This document shows positions 4,119 to 16,480 of a DNA stretch of 64,000 bases, piece after piece. Below the pieces are notes generated by a model. That model was not told the origin of the DNA, did no database searches, and saw only the letters and a program-made list of their open reading frames with translations. The stretch lies in NCBI GenBank assembly GCA_964247055.1, contig OZ176057.1, forward strand, positions 248,001 through 312,000, given 5' to 3'. How positions within the stretch are numbered: the first letter of the stretch is position 1; each line of letters begins with the position of its first letter. This DNA is from Paragordius varius. Its lineage: Eukaryota; Animalia; Nematomorpha. The position numbers and the translations under genes are program-made.

Positions 4119-5167
4119 CTAGCTTTGATGACTGCATTCAAAACTTTTCATCCATGGTAACCCAAAAATGTTACCCCAATCTTCCCTAGTAACCATACAT
4201 TCCAACTGTTTGACCATACCATTCCATTTCACATCTACATCACATTGTCCCATCACCTCTACACCTTGCTGGTTGAATCCAAATATTGGACCCGCGGGAG
4301 CTAAGGTCGGCCTCCCAATCTCCATCCACGTGCTCTTCCCAATCAATGATATTTGAGCTCCGGTATCGTACAACATCCTTACCCAATGGCCATTCAGACT
4401 TGCTTGCGTTCGGGCTTCCTTATTATTATTGTTACCATTCAGTATATTAACGCGCCGGGAACACCTGCCAAAATGACTACGTCCTTTGCATCGGTAACAC
4501 TCCTTGTTTGAAGCGGGACACCAGATCGCATGCACGTATCCACATTTTCCACATTTTTTTCTTATCATCATAACCTGTCTATTTTCGGGACCCTGATCAA
4601 TCAAACAGCTGTCAGCCTTTTCGTACGCCATTGCCATTACTACCACCATCTCCAACGTAACCGGTTTCCCATCAACCATTGCATCTGGAAATTTTGTAAA
4701 CAGATCTATTTCCAATCTTTTGAGTTGTAACCCTCCAACAAACCCATTTCTGATTCTTAGCATTGCATCTGGCCCAAAGTTGCACCGGGCAGCATATTCC
4801 TTTACTCGAATCAAAAAAATCCATCACTGATTCCGTGGCTTCCCTTCGGAGTTGCGTAAACTGGAACCTGGCTGCAAACACATTGTATGTCGGAGCAAAT
4901 ATTTTTTTCCCAGCTGCTACCAAAGCATCCCAGCCCACTTCCTCTAACAGTACAGGATAAAAGAATTTCTTCAACTTTGGAATATGGGATAGACCAATGT
5001 AGGCCATTAGTAAGTTTTTTTTTTCGTCATCTTCTGGAATAAATTTCACTTTTAACATTCTCTTTATATAATCGATGTAATCATCAAAGCTAGTTGCGGG
5101 ATCATAGGCTTCCAGACTTAATTTTTCCATGCGCGAATGTAATGAGGTAAAAAAAATTCGACCGCGC
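4119..5167 (-). mobile_element. Ty3/gypsy (K02A2.6-like) gag-protease fragment, inverted relative to its LTR, with a frameshift
   Basis: ORF 4672..5169 is the gag N-terminus. ORF 4119..4814 has zinc-knuckle motifs (CGKCGYVH, CYRCKGRSHF) and an aspartic protease motif (LYDTGAQISLI). RT and integrase are absent. Confidence 0.85.
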
Positions 5168-5371
5168 ATAAAAGATATTTTTTTAGTAAAAAAAATTAAT
5201 TAAATAAATTTTAACAGAAATAAAGAAAAACAATGCATCACTTAATATGGACGATGGTCTTATACTGTCTCCTATTTGGAATTATGTATTAATAGAATAA
5301 CAATATCACTTTAATCAATCCATTATAATTATCCCACATCCATACCACTTATCAATATTTATGTCTTTTAT
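5167..5371. repeat. About 205-bp direct repeat, copy 2
   Basis: Matches 3575-3781. Confidence 0.9.
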
Positions 5372-10642: not shown

Positions 10643-11271
10643 ATGAGCCGTCTTACACGCTTTCGTCATGATTGGGATAAATTGGGGAAATTGATATCGA
10701 AGGATAAGATATCTCAATATCAAGCTTTTAAAGCACAGTCAGAAATGAATTTGACCAGGTAGCTTGTTTTTACTAATTTTAGAGTGTTATCATTGCCAGC
10801 CGAGTTACCACGTATCGATTGGTCTCAGTATTCAAAAAATTTAGATCGCGCGTATTTAGAAAAGATGCAAAAAATGGTTTGTTATAAATATATGTAGTAT
10901 GAAAATGCGAAAAGTCAAATTCCTTACCCAAAGGAAAACCTTACTTCAGAAATCAATAAATTAGAAAATGAGAGAGTTTAATTTATTTTTAATATTTAGA
11001 TGGAACAGAGCAAACGTTTTTGCATCGAATCAGAAGCCAGGATAGAGAATGATAAAAAAGAGGTTCAATTCATATGTACATTTAATTTTAGCTTGCGAAA
11101 TGGCAAGATATAATTCCGCTCGAAGATATGTTTGTGGAGGAAGTCTACGACGCTTTTCCTGACCGAACTTATAATGCTTTCGAGCGTCCGACAGTTATTC
11201 CCCACGATTATGGATTTAAACGGCATTTAGCAGACGTTAAACATTTGCATCCAGAACCGTCTGATCACTAA
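10643..11271 (+). CDS. ATP5PD: Mitochondrial ATP synthase subunit d, 5 exons (10643-10758, 10783-10876, 10898-10975, 11000-11062, 11092-11271), 176 aa
   Basis: The spliced product MSRLTRFRHDWDKLGKLIS...LPAELPRIDWSQY...IPYPKE...EARIENDKKELAKWQDIIPLEDMFVEEVYDAFPD matches the conserved subunit-d pattern (DW..., LP..PP.IDW..Y, IP.P, IP...M..E...AFP). The four GT-AG introns are 24, 21, 24 and 29 nt. Confidence 0.92.
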
Positions 11272-11349
11272 ACTTTTATATAGTGAATTTCGGCTTTTAG
11301 TACAAAATAAACTGTGTTTAAAAAATTTATTTTGCTATTCGTAATTCAA

Positions 11350-14300
11350 TCAATTTTTTAATTGGAAAAATTCGTTCAAGTTTGTTAAAATATCATCCAT
11401 CAATTCCGTGTTGGCTAAAATGTTGACAAAAAATATAAATTATGCAGACATATAAAAGACATTCGAATTTATTGATTTTTTAAAATGAATCATTTTTTCG
11501 GGTTGCAAAATTAAGTGTGAATCACTAATAATTATAAAATATTGTTCATATAATTTTAAGGAAATCTCATTAAAAAGCATGGTTATGTTTTGTTTTCTAT
11601 AATTATATTCCAAAAATAATATAAACTATTTTAAAATAAATAAGTTAAAAAAATTAAGTTTGTTTATTTAACTAGTTCTTAATTGTAAAAATTCTTTTAT
11701 CGGTAGTTATATTTAAAATACTGACTCATAACAAATTTTAGTATAAAATAAAATATGTAATTTTTTGTGCTTTAATTTACATAAATACCCAATATTTCTT
11801 GAATGTTATCGGCTATAAATATTTACAATATATATATTTACCACCAAGATGCCCACTTAATTCTAAAATTTAATATATTATTAGATACAATCATTAATAT
11901 TTAAAATTATACGGGCGAAACATAAAAATATAAATACAAAATGTTTTTGTTAAAACAAACATTAATTTTTTTGATATACAGGAAAATCTGAAATTATACG
12001 GACAAAACGTAAAAATATAAAGACAAAAATTTTTTTTCATAAAGACAGTCATATTTAAATCTAGAATCACTCATTGTTTTAAATGGCATGAAATAAAGTT
12101 ATATAATACTAACACAATTCTATATTATACAATTGTAAGATAATTAAGGTTTAAAAAAGTGTGGTTGTCTTTTTATTACAAACATTTGATTTTATATTTT
12201 TAGGTTTTAACCATATAATTTTAATTTTTACTGTAAATATTACAATTTACATCGATTGTGTTGTCAATATACATTTCTTTTTCCTACTTTAAAATTTAAA
12301 CAATAAATCATATATAATGCAGCAGAGATCTTTTGATCCAAAGATTTGTCTTTATATTTTATGTTTTGTCTGTATAATTTTTATTTTACTGGTTATAAAT
12401 TTTTTGTACTTAAAAACTATCATACCCTCAATGACGTTGAGTGGGCCTTAATAGACATTATGAAATATGTAATTATACTATTTATGAATCCATCAGTAAG
12501 AATGTTTAAAACTCGATTGATGCCTAAGTATTGTAAGTTAACAAAATAATGAAACTTCTTAAAGTTCGTTTTAGTCCTAAGGCGTTGATTACACATAATT
12601 TATGAATAAAGCATACTTTGGAATAAATTTTGAAATTCTAAAATATATATATATATATAATATCATTTACAATTCAAATTCTCTCTTGAACTATTTAAAT
12701 TCACCCTGAAAATAAATTATGTTTTTTTCGGGCAGCTAATATAACTCATTGATATGAAATATATCTTTTGTAAAAACATAGTTTATTATATCTTCCGGTT
12801 TTATATATTAATTTTAAACAGAATTGAATTCATATTTTAAAAATATTATAAAATAAAGGTGCTTTTCTTAAAAAACATAATATCTTTTATGGTAAATTTG
12901 AATTGTTCGAGAGGGTGAATTTGAACTGTAAATGGTATAAAAATATAGTTTGATGGGAAAAAGCTACCTCGTATCCTTGTTCCTGTTTCCACTTTTTAAA
13001 AAAGTTAAAAAAATTTCTTACAATCACCACCTAAAACATATAATGCTATATAATACTTTGTGTCCATATTCTTAACTCTGTTAATATTCAACGTAATTAA
13101 CCTTGTAAAAGGGGCTGAATTTGATTATCCAAAACTTCTAGACCTTTAGTTTATATGAGAAATCCCACAATACAGTAAAAACGTAAAAATATAAAGACAA
13201 TTACTTTATAAAAGACAATCATATTTTTACAAACCTTAATTTATCCTCTTAATTAATTAATTAACAACGATCTTAAAATATGTAATTAATTGTGGTACCA
13301 ATATCTATTCTATACCTTGGAGTTTAAAAAATGAGTTATATATAAAAAAATTATAAAAAAAGTATAGTTGTATTTAAGAAAAAAATAGTTGTCTTTGTAT
13401 TTTTACGTTTTGTCCGAATAATTTCAACTTTTTACTGTATTTACTTGTAATTAAGCCTTGATTTACTGTGTACATAAATTAGAAAATAACTTACCATTTT
13501 CAACGTAGTTTATAGCTTTTATCAAATAACCAAATAATATAAACCTCGAAATATATAAGCCCTTTGTCCTGTTTTTCGTGAAATATTAATAATTTAAGAA
13601 TATACGGTTAAATATTTCTTCACTCAACTCTATTTAAATAGTTATTGCATATTAAATTCGATACCTTCGTCACCTATTTTATGTTAATAGAGGTTATTAC
13701 TGGATTCTTGGATATTTTCGCCTGTATATATAATATATTTTATTAAATTTTACTTGAAGAACTTGAGATCTTTGATTCTGGAAAGGTTAAAAGTCAAGAT
13801 AATACCCTTAGGAATATTCCCTTTATTAAAATATATATACCATTTACAGTTCAAATTCACCCTTGAATAATTCAAATTTAACCCTAAAATTAACTATCTG
13901 TTCTTTTAGGATTAAAAATTACCTATATTTTTTATATAATGAAAATTTCTTTTTTAATTGATATAATACTGAAAAAATAATAAAATATGACATAAGAATA
14001 TATTTCTTATTATTGATGAGTTTTATTAGCCCGAAAACAAACAATTTATTTTTAGGGTGAATTGAATTGTAAATGGTATATATTTATTTACAATGTTCAC
14101 TAATACAGTAAATATTTAATTTATACAGACAAAATGTAAAAGCATTTTAGATAATTAAAAAAAACCATACTTTCTAAAAAGTTTAATTATATAATCGAGT
14201 GTACTATCAATTTTTCCTAATAACCTTCATTTCACAGCCTAAAAAGATGAATTATTAAAAAAATCAAGGTTTATAAAAGAATGGTTGTTTTTTGGAAACA

Positions 14301-16480
14301 AATATTTGTCTGTATAATTTAACATTCTGTCGTGTCCCAATCTAAAATTCTATTATTTTAGTTTTTTTAAGTACCATTATTTTCTATTTGTCCATGAGTT
14401 GAGGTGGATGGACCATTTAGACGAGGAGAATTGCTCATTTCAGGGAGAGAAGAGGACGAGGAAATACTCGCCGCCGAAGACGAGGTCGAACTCGCAATGG
14501 CAACAACAGCTGATGCACCACCCACTCCAGCACCAATAGCAACAGCAGCTGGCACCGTAGAAACAGACAGGGCTGATGCTTCGCCCCCTTCCGTTGCCAT
14601 GGCAACCAAGGACTCTAACGATTCTGCTTGTGAAGAATCACTCATTCTCCACAGATTCAAGCGAGCATTCCTCGTTGGGTTCAACGACGGAGGGTTCGGG
14701 TCCAATTCGATGGAATCGAGATTTTTCATGTTTAACAAATTGTTGTTTGTGGATCGAGGAGTAGATTGAAAACTTTGCTCAACTGCCCTACTACTTAATT
14801 CCCCATTTCGTGGTAGTGAGATTGAAGGCTCGGAAGGATTTGCATGAATTTCTGCTTGTGTAACAATTTGCCCTCCCAAAGTATTCGCTGACGATTGTTC
14901 TCCCGCAAAATCTATTTTTGGTATTTGTTCAAAGTTTGAATTTTCTATGGCAGGCAGATCTGATGATTCAATAGTGTTGGGTTTTATAACGGCTTCTTCA
15001 GTGTTGATTGGTTTCATTTCCAAATACTCGGACGCGATAGATTTTGTCGGTTGACCTTTCAGAGTTTTCGTTAAAATTAGGGCACCAGTTCCGGCTAATT
15101 AATATTTTAAAACGTAAATACCTGCGATTCCCCCAACTAAAATTACATAATTTTATTGTATCTAACGGGTTATTGGTCCAACAATATAGACTTTTGAATT
15201 CGTTGCCAAGGGTTTTTTTATTTCTACAATCTTTTTGTTGACCGTATATCGGAAATTTAGCGATACCCAGTTTACGTCAATATCGAAGTTAATATCTTGT
15301 AAGTTTACAGTAAAAATTATGATTATATAGACAAAAAATAAAATCACAAAGACAAATATTTTTTTTCAAAGTATAACCACGTACTATTTAAAACTTTAAT
15401 TTTTCCTATATACATAAAAAAAATTATTGCGATCTTTGAAAAAAGTTATTTGTCTTTATGTTTTTAATTTTTGTCTGAATATTTCATTTTACTAACCATT
15501 CATGATACTTAAAATCATTTTGCATGTCGTTCTCACTAAACATTATTATCTTTTTTGATAACTTTCCCAGAAAAATTCTATATAAAAAAATAGCAGAGAA
15601 TATATTTACAGTAAAAACTAAAATTATACGAACAAAACGTAAAATACATATTTTTTTCTAAAAGACAACCATACTTTTTTAAAATTTTTCTCATATAGAT
15701 AATTTATTTGCAACCATAATATATATATAACTGATTGTGTTACCAATATACATAAAAATTTTGTATTTTTGTTTTTACGTTTTGTTTATATATTCAAGGT
15801 TTACTGTACCTTTTCGATACTTCGCATCTACATATACATTTATATTTAGTTTAAAAAATATACCAACTAACTGCATTATATACGTTTTAACGGGTATAAT
15901 TACTGTTTTATTAGCATACATATCTATATAAATAAGAAAATTATTAAACCCGCGATTGTTGGAAGTAAAATGAATGTAAAATCAGTTTCATTGTTTAATG
16001 TATGTTGGCCTGTATATATTTACAATAAATGAAATTATACGGACAAAACGTAAAAAATATAAAGACAAAAGTTTTTTTCAAAAGATAACCGTACTTTTTC
16101 AAACCTTAATTTATCCTATTAAAAGCATTAGTTAACAATCGTATAATATGTCATTGATTGTGTGACCAATATATATTCTATTTTACACTTTGCTGTTTAA
16201 AACAATGAGTTATATTAATAACAATTATGGTTTTAAATAGTATAATTGTCTTTTGAAAAAAAAGTGTCTTTATATTTTTACATTTTGTCCGTAAAATTTT
16301 AATTTTTACTATAGTTCATATAAAATTATACTTTCCGTTGGTGTTAAACTTTGGTCCCAATCAGAGGTGTTTTTATTAAGTTCAGCCAAAACTACAGTAA
16401 AAAATTATAAATACAAATCCCAAAAACTCCATGACAAATATATTTATTGTAAACACAGCATTACCTTTTATATATGCCAT
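11350..16480 (-). CDS. Uncharacterised micro-exon gene (about 489 aa, 25 exons): possible FN3-like domain, S/T/P-rich stalk with a G/A-rich hydrophobic stretch, then a helical tail encoded by 19 micro-exons
   Basis: Exons on the minus strand: 16480-16465, 16391-16332, 16009-15950, 15295-15167, 15094-14375, 14341-14324, 13820-13806, 13777-13754, 13721-13701, 13673-13665, 13629-13606, 13568-13545, 13515-13495, 13465-13445, 13137-13102, 13077-13057, 13030-13022, 12991-12968, 12637-12617, 12576-12556, 12523-12479, 12446-12426, 11862-11842, 11812-11789, 11414-11350. All introns are GT-AG and phase 1, all internal exons are multiples of 3, and the frame stays open to TGA. The start exon is uncertain. 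Confidence 0.8.
12664..12935. mobile_element. MITE family 2 (TIR CCATTTACAGTTCAAATTCACCC, TA-flanked, Tc1/mariner-like)
   Basis: Terminal inverted repeats are visible. Other copies lie at 13840-14076, about 27530-27870, 29560-29765, 31490-31725 and 62061-62293. Confidence 0.75.
13173..13438. mobile_element. MITE family 1 (TIR CAGTAAAAATTGAAATTATACGGACAAAAC, TA-flanked, Tc1/mariner-like)
   Basis: TA|CAGTAAAA...TTTTACTG|TA. About 20 related copies occur in the window, e.g. about 11980-12236, 15608-15808, 16021-16312, 25660-25897, 26940-27197, 30962-31230, 40630-40909, 47230-47511, 48571-48825, 49200-49476, 56950-57225 and 61205-61460. Confidence 0.8.
13840..14076. mobile_element. MITE family 2 copy
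   Basis: TA|CCATTTACAGTTCAAATTCACCC...GGGTGAATTGAATTGTAAATGG|TA. Confidence 0.8.

Follow-up and report, generated by a model that had tools for sequence, protein, structure and literature searches.

The question raised by this locus is whether an array of very small exons, none of which is visible in the list of open reading frames, belongs to a real gene on the minus strand, and whether such a gene diversifies its product as the micro-exon genes (MEGs) of flatworms do. The window, i.e. the whole stretch of DNA that was analysed, is 64,000 nucleotides long. An earlier note had described 19 minus-strand islands between 14341 and 11789, and their coordinates, lengths (18, 15, 24, 21, 9, 24, 24, 21, 21, 36, 21, 9, 24, 21, 21, 45, 21, 21 and 24 nt), AG/GT borders, phase 1, open joined frame and peptides all agree with our reading, as does its count of 24-40 nt introns (15 of the 20 flanking ones). 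The islands are also richer in GC than their surroundings, as had been claimed: 0.345 in the micro-exons versus 0.194 in the short introns. The product length had to be corrected, as rebuilding that model yields 493 aa rather than 489 aa.

The proposed hidden gene of symmetric phase-1 micro-exons is supported and reaches further 5' than had been described, as three additional phase-1 micro-exons (2b, 2c and 3b) were exposed upstream by removal of MITEs. Exon/intron anatomy, splice-site signals, helical periodicity and MITE history are read directly at the locus. The revised model comprises 30 exons and 29 introns on the minus strand, every intron being in phase 1, with a product of 538 aa; 26 of the 30 exons count as frame-neutral micro-exons, their sizes being 9-60 nt, and 21 introns of the current locus are still in the 24-43 nt class. 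The features are as follows.

16465-16480, minus strand: candidate exon 1, 16 nt, with ATG; the weakest exon of the model
16332-16391, minus strand: exon 2, 60 nt, phase 1
15950-16009, minus strand: exon 2b, 60 nt, phase 1; new relative to the earlier note
15864-15923, minus strand: exon 2c, 60 nt, phase 1; new; 26-nt intron before, 36-nt intron after
15810-15827, minus strand: exon 3, 18 nt, phase 1
15563-15577, minus strand: exon 3b, 15 nt, phase 1; new; 27-nt intron after
15497-15535, minus strand: exon 4, 39 nt, phase 1
15167-15295, minus strand: exon 5, 129 nt, phase 1; start of hydrophobic segment 1
15122-15136, minus strand: exon 6, 15 nt, phase 1; middle of hydrophobic segment 1
14375-15094, minus strand: exon 7, 720 nt; end of hydrophobic segment 1, acidic Ser-rich linker, hydrophobic segment 2
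14324-14341, minus strand: doubtful exon 8, 18 nt, inside a MITE copy; first micro-exon of the earlier note
13445-13820, minus strand: micro-exons 9-16, eight exons with seven short introns (exons 9-12 at 13820-13806, 13777-13754, 13721-13701, 13673-13665; exons 13-16 at 13629-13606, 13568-13545, 13515-13495, 13465-13445)
12968-13137, minus strand: micro-exons 17-20 (13137-13102, 13077-13057, 13030-13022, 12991-12968)
12426-12637, minus strand: micro-exons 21-24 (12637-12617, 12576-12556, 12523-12479, 12446-12426)
11789-11862, minus strand: micro-exons 25-26 (11862-11842, 11812-11789)
11350-11414, minus strand: terminal exon 27, 65 nt including the stop
11326-11331, minus strand: AATAAA, likely poly(A) signal, 18 nt past the stop

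Introns within the array measure 28, 32, 27, 35, 37, 29 and 29 nt (exons 9-16), 24, 26 and 30 nt (exons 17-20), 40, 32 and 32 nt (exons 21-24) and 29 nt (between exons 25 and 26), and 13 of the 19 micro-exons are 21 nt (eight) or 24 nt (five) long. Exon 6 lies between introns of 30 and 27 nt, and a unique, repeat-free intron of 374 nt precedes exon 27. The convergent neighbour gene has its own AATAAA at 11306 on the plus strand. At the 5' end, the start codon in exon 1 is uncertain, and an in-frame ATG at 15921, inside exon 2c, offers an alternative start. The 36-nt intron between exons 2c and 3 is itself in frame and stop-free, so that the two may form one continuous exon. Likewise, the joint of exons 4 and 5 is provisional because intron 4 is nearly all MITE: its 201 nt consist of a 5'-truncated element and only ~12-16 nt more.

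Repeats occupy 2048 of the 5131 nt of the locus (40%), in the following copies.

15301-16316, minus strand: MITE-A copies in the 5' introns (about 16316-16015, 15807-15599 and 15490-15301)
14101-14373, minus strand: MITE-A copy beginning exactly past the G of the exon 7 donor; read depth 1e4-1e6
13831-14093, minus strand: MITE-B copy, in the same ancestral intron as the MITE-A copy at the exon 7 donor
13173-13439, minus strand: MITE-A copy in intron 16, now 307 nt, ~33-40 nt without the MITE
12643-12939, minus strand: MITE-B copy in intron 20, now 330 nt, ~33 nt without the MITE
11892-12399, minus strand: several MITE-A copies or fragments in intron 24, now 563 nt, ~55-85 nt without them

When the MITEs are subtracted, most affected introns return to about 31-43 nt with correct GT/AG. 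The same operation predicted three further exons, all of them open, in phase 1 and divisible by 3: exon 2b was found in a 504-nt intron, of which ~31 nt of non-MITE intron is left before the exon, and the intron before exon 3b shrinks to ~32 nt. MITE ends are used as the acceptor of exon 2 (TACTGTA+G, family D1) and as the donors of exons 3, 4, 7 and 8, that of exon 3 being G plus the MITE end TACAGTAAACC. MITEs and exons overlap by only 8 nt, all in the doubtful exon 8, and the other insertions are intronic. Ancestrally, most introns would have belonged to the 24-43 nt class of this genome, and seven of them would later have received MITE insertions, none within an exon. The donors of introns 3, 4, 7 and 8 are now provided by MITE ends, and a small exon may derive from one of the elements. 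The candidate for this is exon 8, which sits within the MITE-A copy 14373-14101: its acceptor and first 10 nt come from a 17-nt insertion missing in five other MITE-A copies, while its last 8 nt and donor are the MITE terminal repeat. Across the whole window, GATTGGGAC is present in exons 2 and 8 only. As an exon this MITE-borne stretch is doubtful; it may be an exonised element, and the frame is preserved if it is skipped.

The product, ~530 aa, would be composed of an N-terminal region, a Gly/Ala-rich transmembrane-like segment, a probably disordered, acidic Ser-rich stretch containing the second hydrophobic segment, and a C-terminal acidic region of ~130 aa of amphipathic helices. With the 5' end provisional, the predicted N-terminal region of ~120 aa has no evident signal peptide; none was found in the model, and the one 5' ORF that is hydrophobic turned out to be a degenerate piece of MITE. 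Two Gly/Ala-rich hydrophobic segments, the second at residues 320-338, are defined by the hydropathy scale only (KD 1.79 and 1.99). The amphipathic periodicity of the spliced tail amounts to 40.9, versus 16.5±4.3 in residue shuffles and 18.8±5.0 in exon-interior shuffles, 0 of 1000 of which reach 40.9; shuffling the exon order leaves it unchanged, and it is locally strongest in exons 21-24. With its peak periods of 3.2 and 3.7 and its interruptions by Gly/Pro, the tail is better described by short amphipathic helices than by one long coiled coil. Together with the acidic Ser clusters, the scarcity of cysteine (one in 538 aa, with the CYC motif absent) suggests an intracellular tail. Each micro-exon, mostly of 21 or 24 nt, would encode about one heptad-sized, register-neutral module, and with one module per exon and all introns in phase 1 the tail could grow, shrink or be alternatively spliced with the frame intact. 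Most likely, the protein would act as a membrane-anchored scaffold or adaptor, with a helical tail that bundles or pairs with partners.

Could the array be no functional one at all, but a chance path in AT-rich DNA or a decaying remnant, with at most the 720-nt ORF expressed? Under loose limits, block-shuffled copies of the window yield stop-free symmetric AG/GT chains of 5-15 exons, and the bare micro-exon pattern is therefore not beyond chance. By codon usage the micro-exons cannot be told from decoys (z 1.2), a frame-blind composition model failed to recover the exons, and several splice sites are mere MITE ends. Furthermore, a search with the 720-nt exon returned zero relatives among 1.84 billion proteins, not even a self-hit, Pfam gave only a low-complexity, sub-threshold match, and the sequencing runs containing the locus (X1-X5) are DNA in every case. 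Against this stand the splice-context features, tested on properties that had not been used in selecting the exons. The donor +3 base is A in 20 of 26 sites and never G or C (decoys 0.275, p 2e-7), the last exon base is G in 14 of 26 (p 2e-4), and the acceptor -3 base is T in 16 of 26 and never G. The bias persists, with p between 1e-4 and 1e-7, when MITE-supplied sites are left out: donor +3 is A in 19 of 25 (p 6e-7) and never G or C, the last exon base is G in 13 of 25 (p 4e-4), and acceptor -3 is a pyrimidine in 22 of 27 (p 8e-5) and never G. In exons 9-16 the fraction with A at +3 reaches 0.88 and the GC contrast is 0.13, whereas shuffled decoys have no GC contrast and a splice context at background level. 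Almost no alternative frame-keeping GT/AG pairs occur within 9 nt of the chosen sites, and at the observed size ranges the rest of the window holds no decoy chain of at least six exons. Among the 40 natural variants listed, none falls on GT/AG and none creates a stop; 8 of the 19 exonic ones are synonymous (22% expected), the one indel in exon 7 is of 3 nt, and a T>C change at acceptor -3 (13033) in exons 17-20 retains a pyrimidine. Helical periodicity 4-6 sd above shuffles, the exclusion of MITEs from exons and the three exons correctly foretold by MITE removal argue in the same direction. The micro-exon chain is thus far from chance on unselected features, and we regard a chance or decaying array as quite unlikely. 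Nor are phase-1 micro-exons general to genes here, since the conserved convergent neighbour has similarly tiny introns (21-29 nt) but larger exons (63-180 nt) and other phases (2, 0, 0, 0). It is very unlikely, too, that the locus holds two transcription units, one gene being closed by a stop in the intron, three codons beyond the 720-nt exon, with the micro-exons forming a separate transcript. Read-through past the exon 7 donor does give only two more codons (...NNGT) before a stop, 554 nt of MITE separate exons 7 and 9, and exon 8 is doubtful; with both MITEs subtracted, however, a good donor (G|GTATTA) lies ~43 nt from the exon 9 acceptor in the same phase. This spacing, like that of the other ancestral introns of the gene, links the 720-nt exon with the array of micro-exons, and a non-systematic look between exons 7 and 9 revealed no ATG-initiated first exon.

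The earlier note had gone further, proposing that regulated skipping of micro-exons generates protein variants at a host or self/non-self interface, as in MEGs. By the operational definition, a MEG comprises seven or more exons, of which no fewer than half are micro-exons (<70 nt, divisible by 3), four or more of them in a row (10.1101/2020.04.08.031872); here 26 of 30 exons qualify and the run is 18, or 19 with the doubtful exon 8. As had also been noted, some skips create stops, namely 11 of 190 joints, all after an exon ending in T (exon 8 or 19). The other 179 keep the frame, so that variant tails are possible, and the helical register is undisturbed by the order or omission of exons. The host genome may also be a parasite's, its GC content agreeing with that of a published horsehair-worm genome. 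On the other side, no signal peptide was found in the model, the micro-exons follow the transmembrane-like segment and the 720-nt exon, the single cysteine and the acidic Ser clusters suggest an intracellular tail, the amphipathic tail has the layout of chicken BG cytoplasmic tails (PMC4046983), and a search of the window revealed no paralogue or family of the gene. While the symmetric phase-1 micro-exon gene stands, diversification at an interface receives no support from the features examined, and we consider it unlikely. The reading that we prefer is that the minus strand carries, at ~16480-11350, a protein-coding gene that is intact and lineage-specific and that probably encodes a membrane-anchored product with a helical tail; transcription, splicing, membrane topology and function are predicted from the DNA.

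Parasitic flatworms, aphids and chicken BG genes already provide examples of frame-neutral micro-exon runs, which are overlooked by ORF finders and most gene predictors. Should splicing of the present gene follow the prediction, this architecture evolved once more in a further animal lineage, where it would serve a membrane-anchored helical tail rather than a secreted effector, and annotations of AT-rich genomes with tiny introns would lack a whole gene class. The locus also provides a natural experiment, in which MITEs make up 40% of the DNA, every solid exon was avoided and four donors are now MITE ends; this pattern bears on intron lengthening and the possible origin of new micro-exons. It is conceivable, though unlikely, that the locus belongs to a class of micro-exon genes, all in phase 1, that evolved independently and extends across the genome of an ecdysozoan, probably a horsehair worm, with MITE ends recruited as splice sites or exons and modules tuning tail length. 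In that case, exon 8, in which the 17-nt insertion and the MITE terminal repeat give exactly 18 nt, would be a new frame-neutral exon, micro-exon arrays would grow via MITE exonisation, and alternative module use would tune the helical-tail length of a membrane protein.

Among known systems, the MEGs of Schistosoma, Echinococcus and Hymenolepis are described as small secreted proteins with demonstrated splice variants, their micro-exons being flanked by a signal-peptide exon on one side and a 3' exon on the other (DeMarco 2010, as related in 10.1101/2020.04.08.031872). The present gene resembles them in its long divisible-by-3 runs, overlooked by ORF finding and gene finders, and in its predicted frame-preserving exon skipping, but differs in that transmembrane-like segments are present, no signal peptide was found and the micro-exons form a predicted C-terminal helical tail. 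Aphid bicycle/megacycle genes are rich in micro-exons, nearly all of which begin at the second codon position (intron phase 1); exon number sets protein length, and the sequences are too divergent for similarity searches (10.1101/2021.09.24.461719). All 29 introns here are likewise in phase 1. Bicycle proteins, however, bear paired CYC motifs as well as a signal peptide and serve as secreted salivary effectors (10.1101/2021.09.24.461719); the present product has one cysteine and no CYC motif, and no signal peptide was found in it. In chicken BG genes and zipper protein (butyrophilin family), a membrane-anchored protein carries a long tail built from 13-36 small exons per gene; these measure 21 nt, in some cases 24 nt, and every one corresponds to a helical unit the size of a heptad (PMC4046983). 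The present gene differs in its invertebrate host genome, its introns of ~30 nt, the 240-aa Ser-rich exon and second hydrophobic segment that precede the tail, and the Gly/Pro residues that interrupt the helices and make a single long coiled coil unlikely; the Ig-like ectodomain and signal peptide of BG were not found here. The likeness is one of architecture, no sequence relationship being known: as in BG, exons of 21 or 24 nt make up much of the tail (here 13 of 19 micro-exons), each a predicted register-neutral amphipathic module in the present gene, and the predicted layout of the product appears closest to BG tails rather than to secreted schistosome MEGs.

On the minus strand, the 19 small islands that the earlier note had joined into a micro-exon gene were recovered as it described them, in their coordinates, lengths, AG before and GT after, phase-1 entry and joined peptides, and of the 20 introns next to micro-exons, 15 do measure 24-40 nt. 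When rebuilt, that model comprises 27 exons and 26 introns, every intron in phase 1, and yields 493 aa rather than the 489 aa claimed. The GC content is 0.345 in the micro-exons versus 0.194 in the short introns. Removal of the MITEs, two repeat families residing in the introns, exposes three further micro-exons (2b, 2c and 3b) which had been missed, with lengths divisible by 3 and joined via introns of 26, 36 and 27 nt. The model thus extended counts 30 exons separated by 29 introns, all phase 1, and encodes 538 aa with zero internal stops.

Features of the micro-exon gene and its repeats (window coordinates)
16009-15950, minus strand: exon 2b, 60 nt, phase 1, open, exposed by MITE removal
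15923-15864, minus strand: exon 2c, 60 nt, phase 1, open, exposed by MITE removal
15577-15563, minus strand: exon 3b, 15 nt, phase 1, open, exposed by MITE removal
15094-14375, minus strand: exon 7, 720 nt
11415-11788, minus strand: last intron, 374 nt, unique sequence without MITE
11414-11350, minus strand: terminal exon 27
11892-16316: span of the MITE-like copies in the gene
13173-13439: example of MITE-A, about 270 nt, ends TACAGTAAAAATTAAAATTATACGG..., probably with a TA target duplication
12643-12939: example of MITE-B, about 260-300 nt, ends ATACCATTTACAGTTCAAATTCACCCT

Of the 20 short introns, 19 would shift the frame or terminate the protein if retained. The 36-nt intron after exon 2c (15828-15863, minus strand) is the sole short intron whose length is divisible by 3 and which carries no in-frame stop, so that exons 2c and 3 could also be read as one 114-nt exon. 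At the other end of the gene, read-through of the exon 26 donor would end the protein after five extra residues, a possible alternative C-terminus as judged from the sequence.

Repeats occupy 2048 of the 5131 nt of the locus (40%) and belong to the two MITE-like families, which recur across the window; the overlap between exons and repeats amounts to 8 nt of one exon in total. Both families must be extremely abundant in the genome, because their read depth in DNA runs is 1e4-1e6 as compared with about 500-1000 for unique sequence. Upon MITE removal, intron 16 (307 nt) is reduced to about 33-40 nt, intron 20 (330 nt) to about 33 nt and intron 24 (563 nt) to about 55-85 nt, and about 31 and 32 nt remain of the two long 5' introns, properly bounded by GT...AG. 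All long introns between micro-exons upstream of exon 26 are MITE-filled, unlike the 374-nt last intron. The MITE-A end mimics a splice donor; MITE ends (TACAGTAAAA...) serve as the donors of exons 3 and 4 and as the exon 2 acceptor, and intron 4 is MITE nearly throughout. In an alignment of six MITE-A copies, one copy starts at the base directly following the G in the donor of exon 7. Once this copy and the adjacent MITE-B are removed, the exon 7 donor lies about 43 nt from the exon 9 acceptor with equal phase, which links the 720-nt exon with the run of micro-exons.

The same alignment places exon 8 (14341-14324), the first micro-exon of the earlier note, inside the MITE-A copy at the exon 7 donor. 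Its acceptor and first 10 nt are supplied by a 17-nt insertion missing from the other aligned copies, and its last 8 nt together with the donor GT are the MITE terminal repeat. Exon 8 may therefore have been picked by chance; otherwise it is a piece of transposon that became exonised. Skipping it keeps the frame. The 9-mer GATTGGGAC occurs twice in the 64-kb window with both strands counted, where about 0.1 occurrences are expected, and exon 2 may be the source from which the insertion behind exon 8 was copied.

Copies of GATTGGGAC
14342, minus strand: in exon 8, reading Asp-Trp-Asp
16362, minus strand: in exon 2, reading Asp-Trp-Asp

With loose limits (exons of 6-60 nt, introns of 20-45 nt), block-shuffled control copies of the window produce symmetric AG/GT chains that lack stops, contain 5-15 exons and are as long or longer, and the bare micro-exon pattern thus proves nothing. 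Frame-blind segmentation into exons and introns by composition did not recover the tiny exons, having no power at exons of 9-24 nt, and the codon-usage log-odds of the micro-exons against stop-free AG...GT segments of the window (training set of 777 codons) gave a non-significant z of 1.2. Splice context, scarcity of alternatives, uniqueness of the chain and helical periodicity, on none of which the earlier note had selected, do distinguish the micro-exons. In comparison with roughly 1,600 decoy segments, donor position +3 is A in 20 of 26 cases (expected 0.275, p 2e-7) and never G or C; the exon ends in G in 14/26 (p 2e-4), and acceptor position -3 carries T in 16/26 and G in none. These preferences persist when MITE-supplied sites are excluded, with A at donor +3 in 19/25 (p 6e-7), G as the last exon base in 13/25 (p 4e-4) and a pyrimidine at acceptor -3 in 22/27 (p 8e-5). 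Up to 9 nt away from the chosen sites, alternative frame-keeping GT/AG pairs are almost absent. Under strict limits, set to the observed sizes (exons 9-45 nt, introns 24-40 nt), neither strand of the window holds a further chain of at least 6 exons, and shuffled DNA gives few chains, with a mean of 6 exons, background splice context, zero GC contrast and a weak helical signal.

Helical periodicity, taken as the local power at 3.4-3.7 residues averaged over the spliced tail, comes to 40.9 versus 16.5±4.3 in residue shuffles and 18.8±5.0 when exon-interior residues alone are shuffled; 40.9 was reached in 0/1000 shuffles of either kind. Shuffling the order of the exons leaves it almost unchanged (40.5), implying that each exon is a register-neutral module. 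Judged on its sequence, the micro-exon gene is very probably real.

The predicted protein contains two hydrophobic Gly/Ala-rich segments, residues 127-145 (Kyte-Doolittle 1.79) and 320-338 (1.99), with acidic, Ser-rich, low-complexity sequence between and after them. The last ~130 aa are predicted to form amphipathic helices interrupted by Gly/Pro, and the tail is cysteine-free with a net charge of -11. Of the 19 micro-exons, 13 have a length of 21 or 24 nt, and most of these encode hydrophobic residues at exon positions 2 and 5/6. No signal peptide was found in the candidate N-terminal region of about 120 aa. The sole hydrophobic candidate for a signal-peptide first exon (16480-16396) is read from a degenerate MITE fragment, does not allow an in-frame join with exon 2, and is probably spurious.

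Run searches for the locus turned up DNA runs and no RNA run; the DNA nature is seen from flat depth over introns and unspliced contigs. Over 11350-16480, these five runs reveal a divergent haplotype with about 4% difference in some stretches; for instance, 11 differences and 3 gaps separate it from the window within the 280 nt of 12344-12623. Among the 40 variants listed of 244 differences, none hits a GT/AG or creates a new stop, the one at acceptor -3 is T>C, the exon 7 indel is 3 nt, and 8 of the 19 exonic changes are synonymous versus 22% expected. The listed variants fit constraint on the gene, a signal that is weak but consistent. A 1-nt deletion in the A7 stretch of exon 5 is present in one sequencing run, is absent from the other run of the same sample, and is probably an artefact. 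Over 14232-14382, exon 8 included, the run assigned to another organism matches the window exactly, which implies that this organism is conspecific or very closely related.

The micro-exon gene faces a convergent neighbour with ordinary exons.

10643-11271, plus strand: convergent neighbour gene, uninterrupted 176-aa protein

This neighbour has exons of 116, 94, 78, 63 and 180 nt, separated by introns of 24, 21, 24 and 29 nt in phases 2,0,0,0; the two stop codons are 78 nt apart, with an AATAAA for each gene inside the gap. The FERM/JAK-like and carbohydrate-sulfotransferase ORFs of the window are single exons of 800-1000 nt. Together, these genes imply that phase-1 micro-exons characterise this gene without being shared by every gene of the genome. 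The window is animal DNA with a GC content of about 27% and very short introns, and its GC and transposon load are in line with a published horsehair-worm genome (26.9% GC, 64% repeats, mostly DNA transposons). Elsewhere in the window, minus-strand ORFs at 4119-5169 give weak Pfam matches to aspartyl-protease and gag-protease, which suggests a retroelement remnant.

An exhaustive search of the 720-nt exon against 1.84 billion representative proteins returned 0 matches, self included. In Pfam the exon has no family and one sub-threshold low-complexity match, and its neighbours in the protein atlas score at most 0.70, below the useful threshold. Within the window, tblastn found no paralogue, and the Rfam scan gave no match. 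No similarity between exon-intron units, sought as a sign of recent tandem duplication, was detected. In the literature collection searched, we found no paper linking the horsehair-worm phylum with micro-exon genes.

The earlier note had proposed diversification by exon skipping, as in the flatworm micro-exon genes (MEGs). The gene does fall within the published operational definition of MEGs (10.1101/2020.04.08.031872), and 179 of 190 skip joints are frame-safe; stops arise after T-ending exons, as had been pointed out, at the other 11, all of them after exon 8 or 19. However, the MEG layout of a signal peptide and a small secreted protein is not seen in the predicted product, and we regard MEG-like diversification as unsupported and improbable. 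The aphid bicycle genes share the all-phase-1 rule (10.1101/2021.09.24.461719), but they carry cysteine-tyrosine-cysteine (CYC) motifs, which the predicted product lacks. By analogy, the closest functional counterpart is the cytoplasmic tail of the chicken BG proteins, encoded by a series of 13-36 exons that are 21 or 24 nt long and correspond to one heptad unit each (PMC4046983). Since the tail resembles that of BG proteins and the secreted layout of MEGs is not seen, we read the product as a membrane-anchored protein whose tail is helical and modular rather than as a secreted diversification system, a moderately supported assignment that we consider somewhat probable. Alternative tail lengths are possible for such a protein, and the in-frame 'read-through introns' described in BG genes resemble the possible fusion of exons 2c and 3 here.
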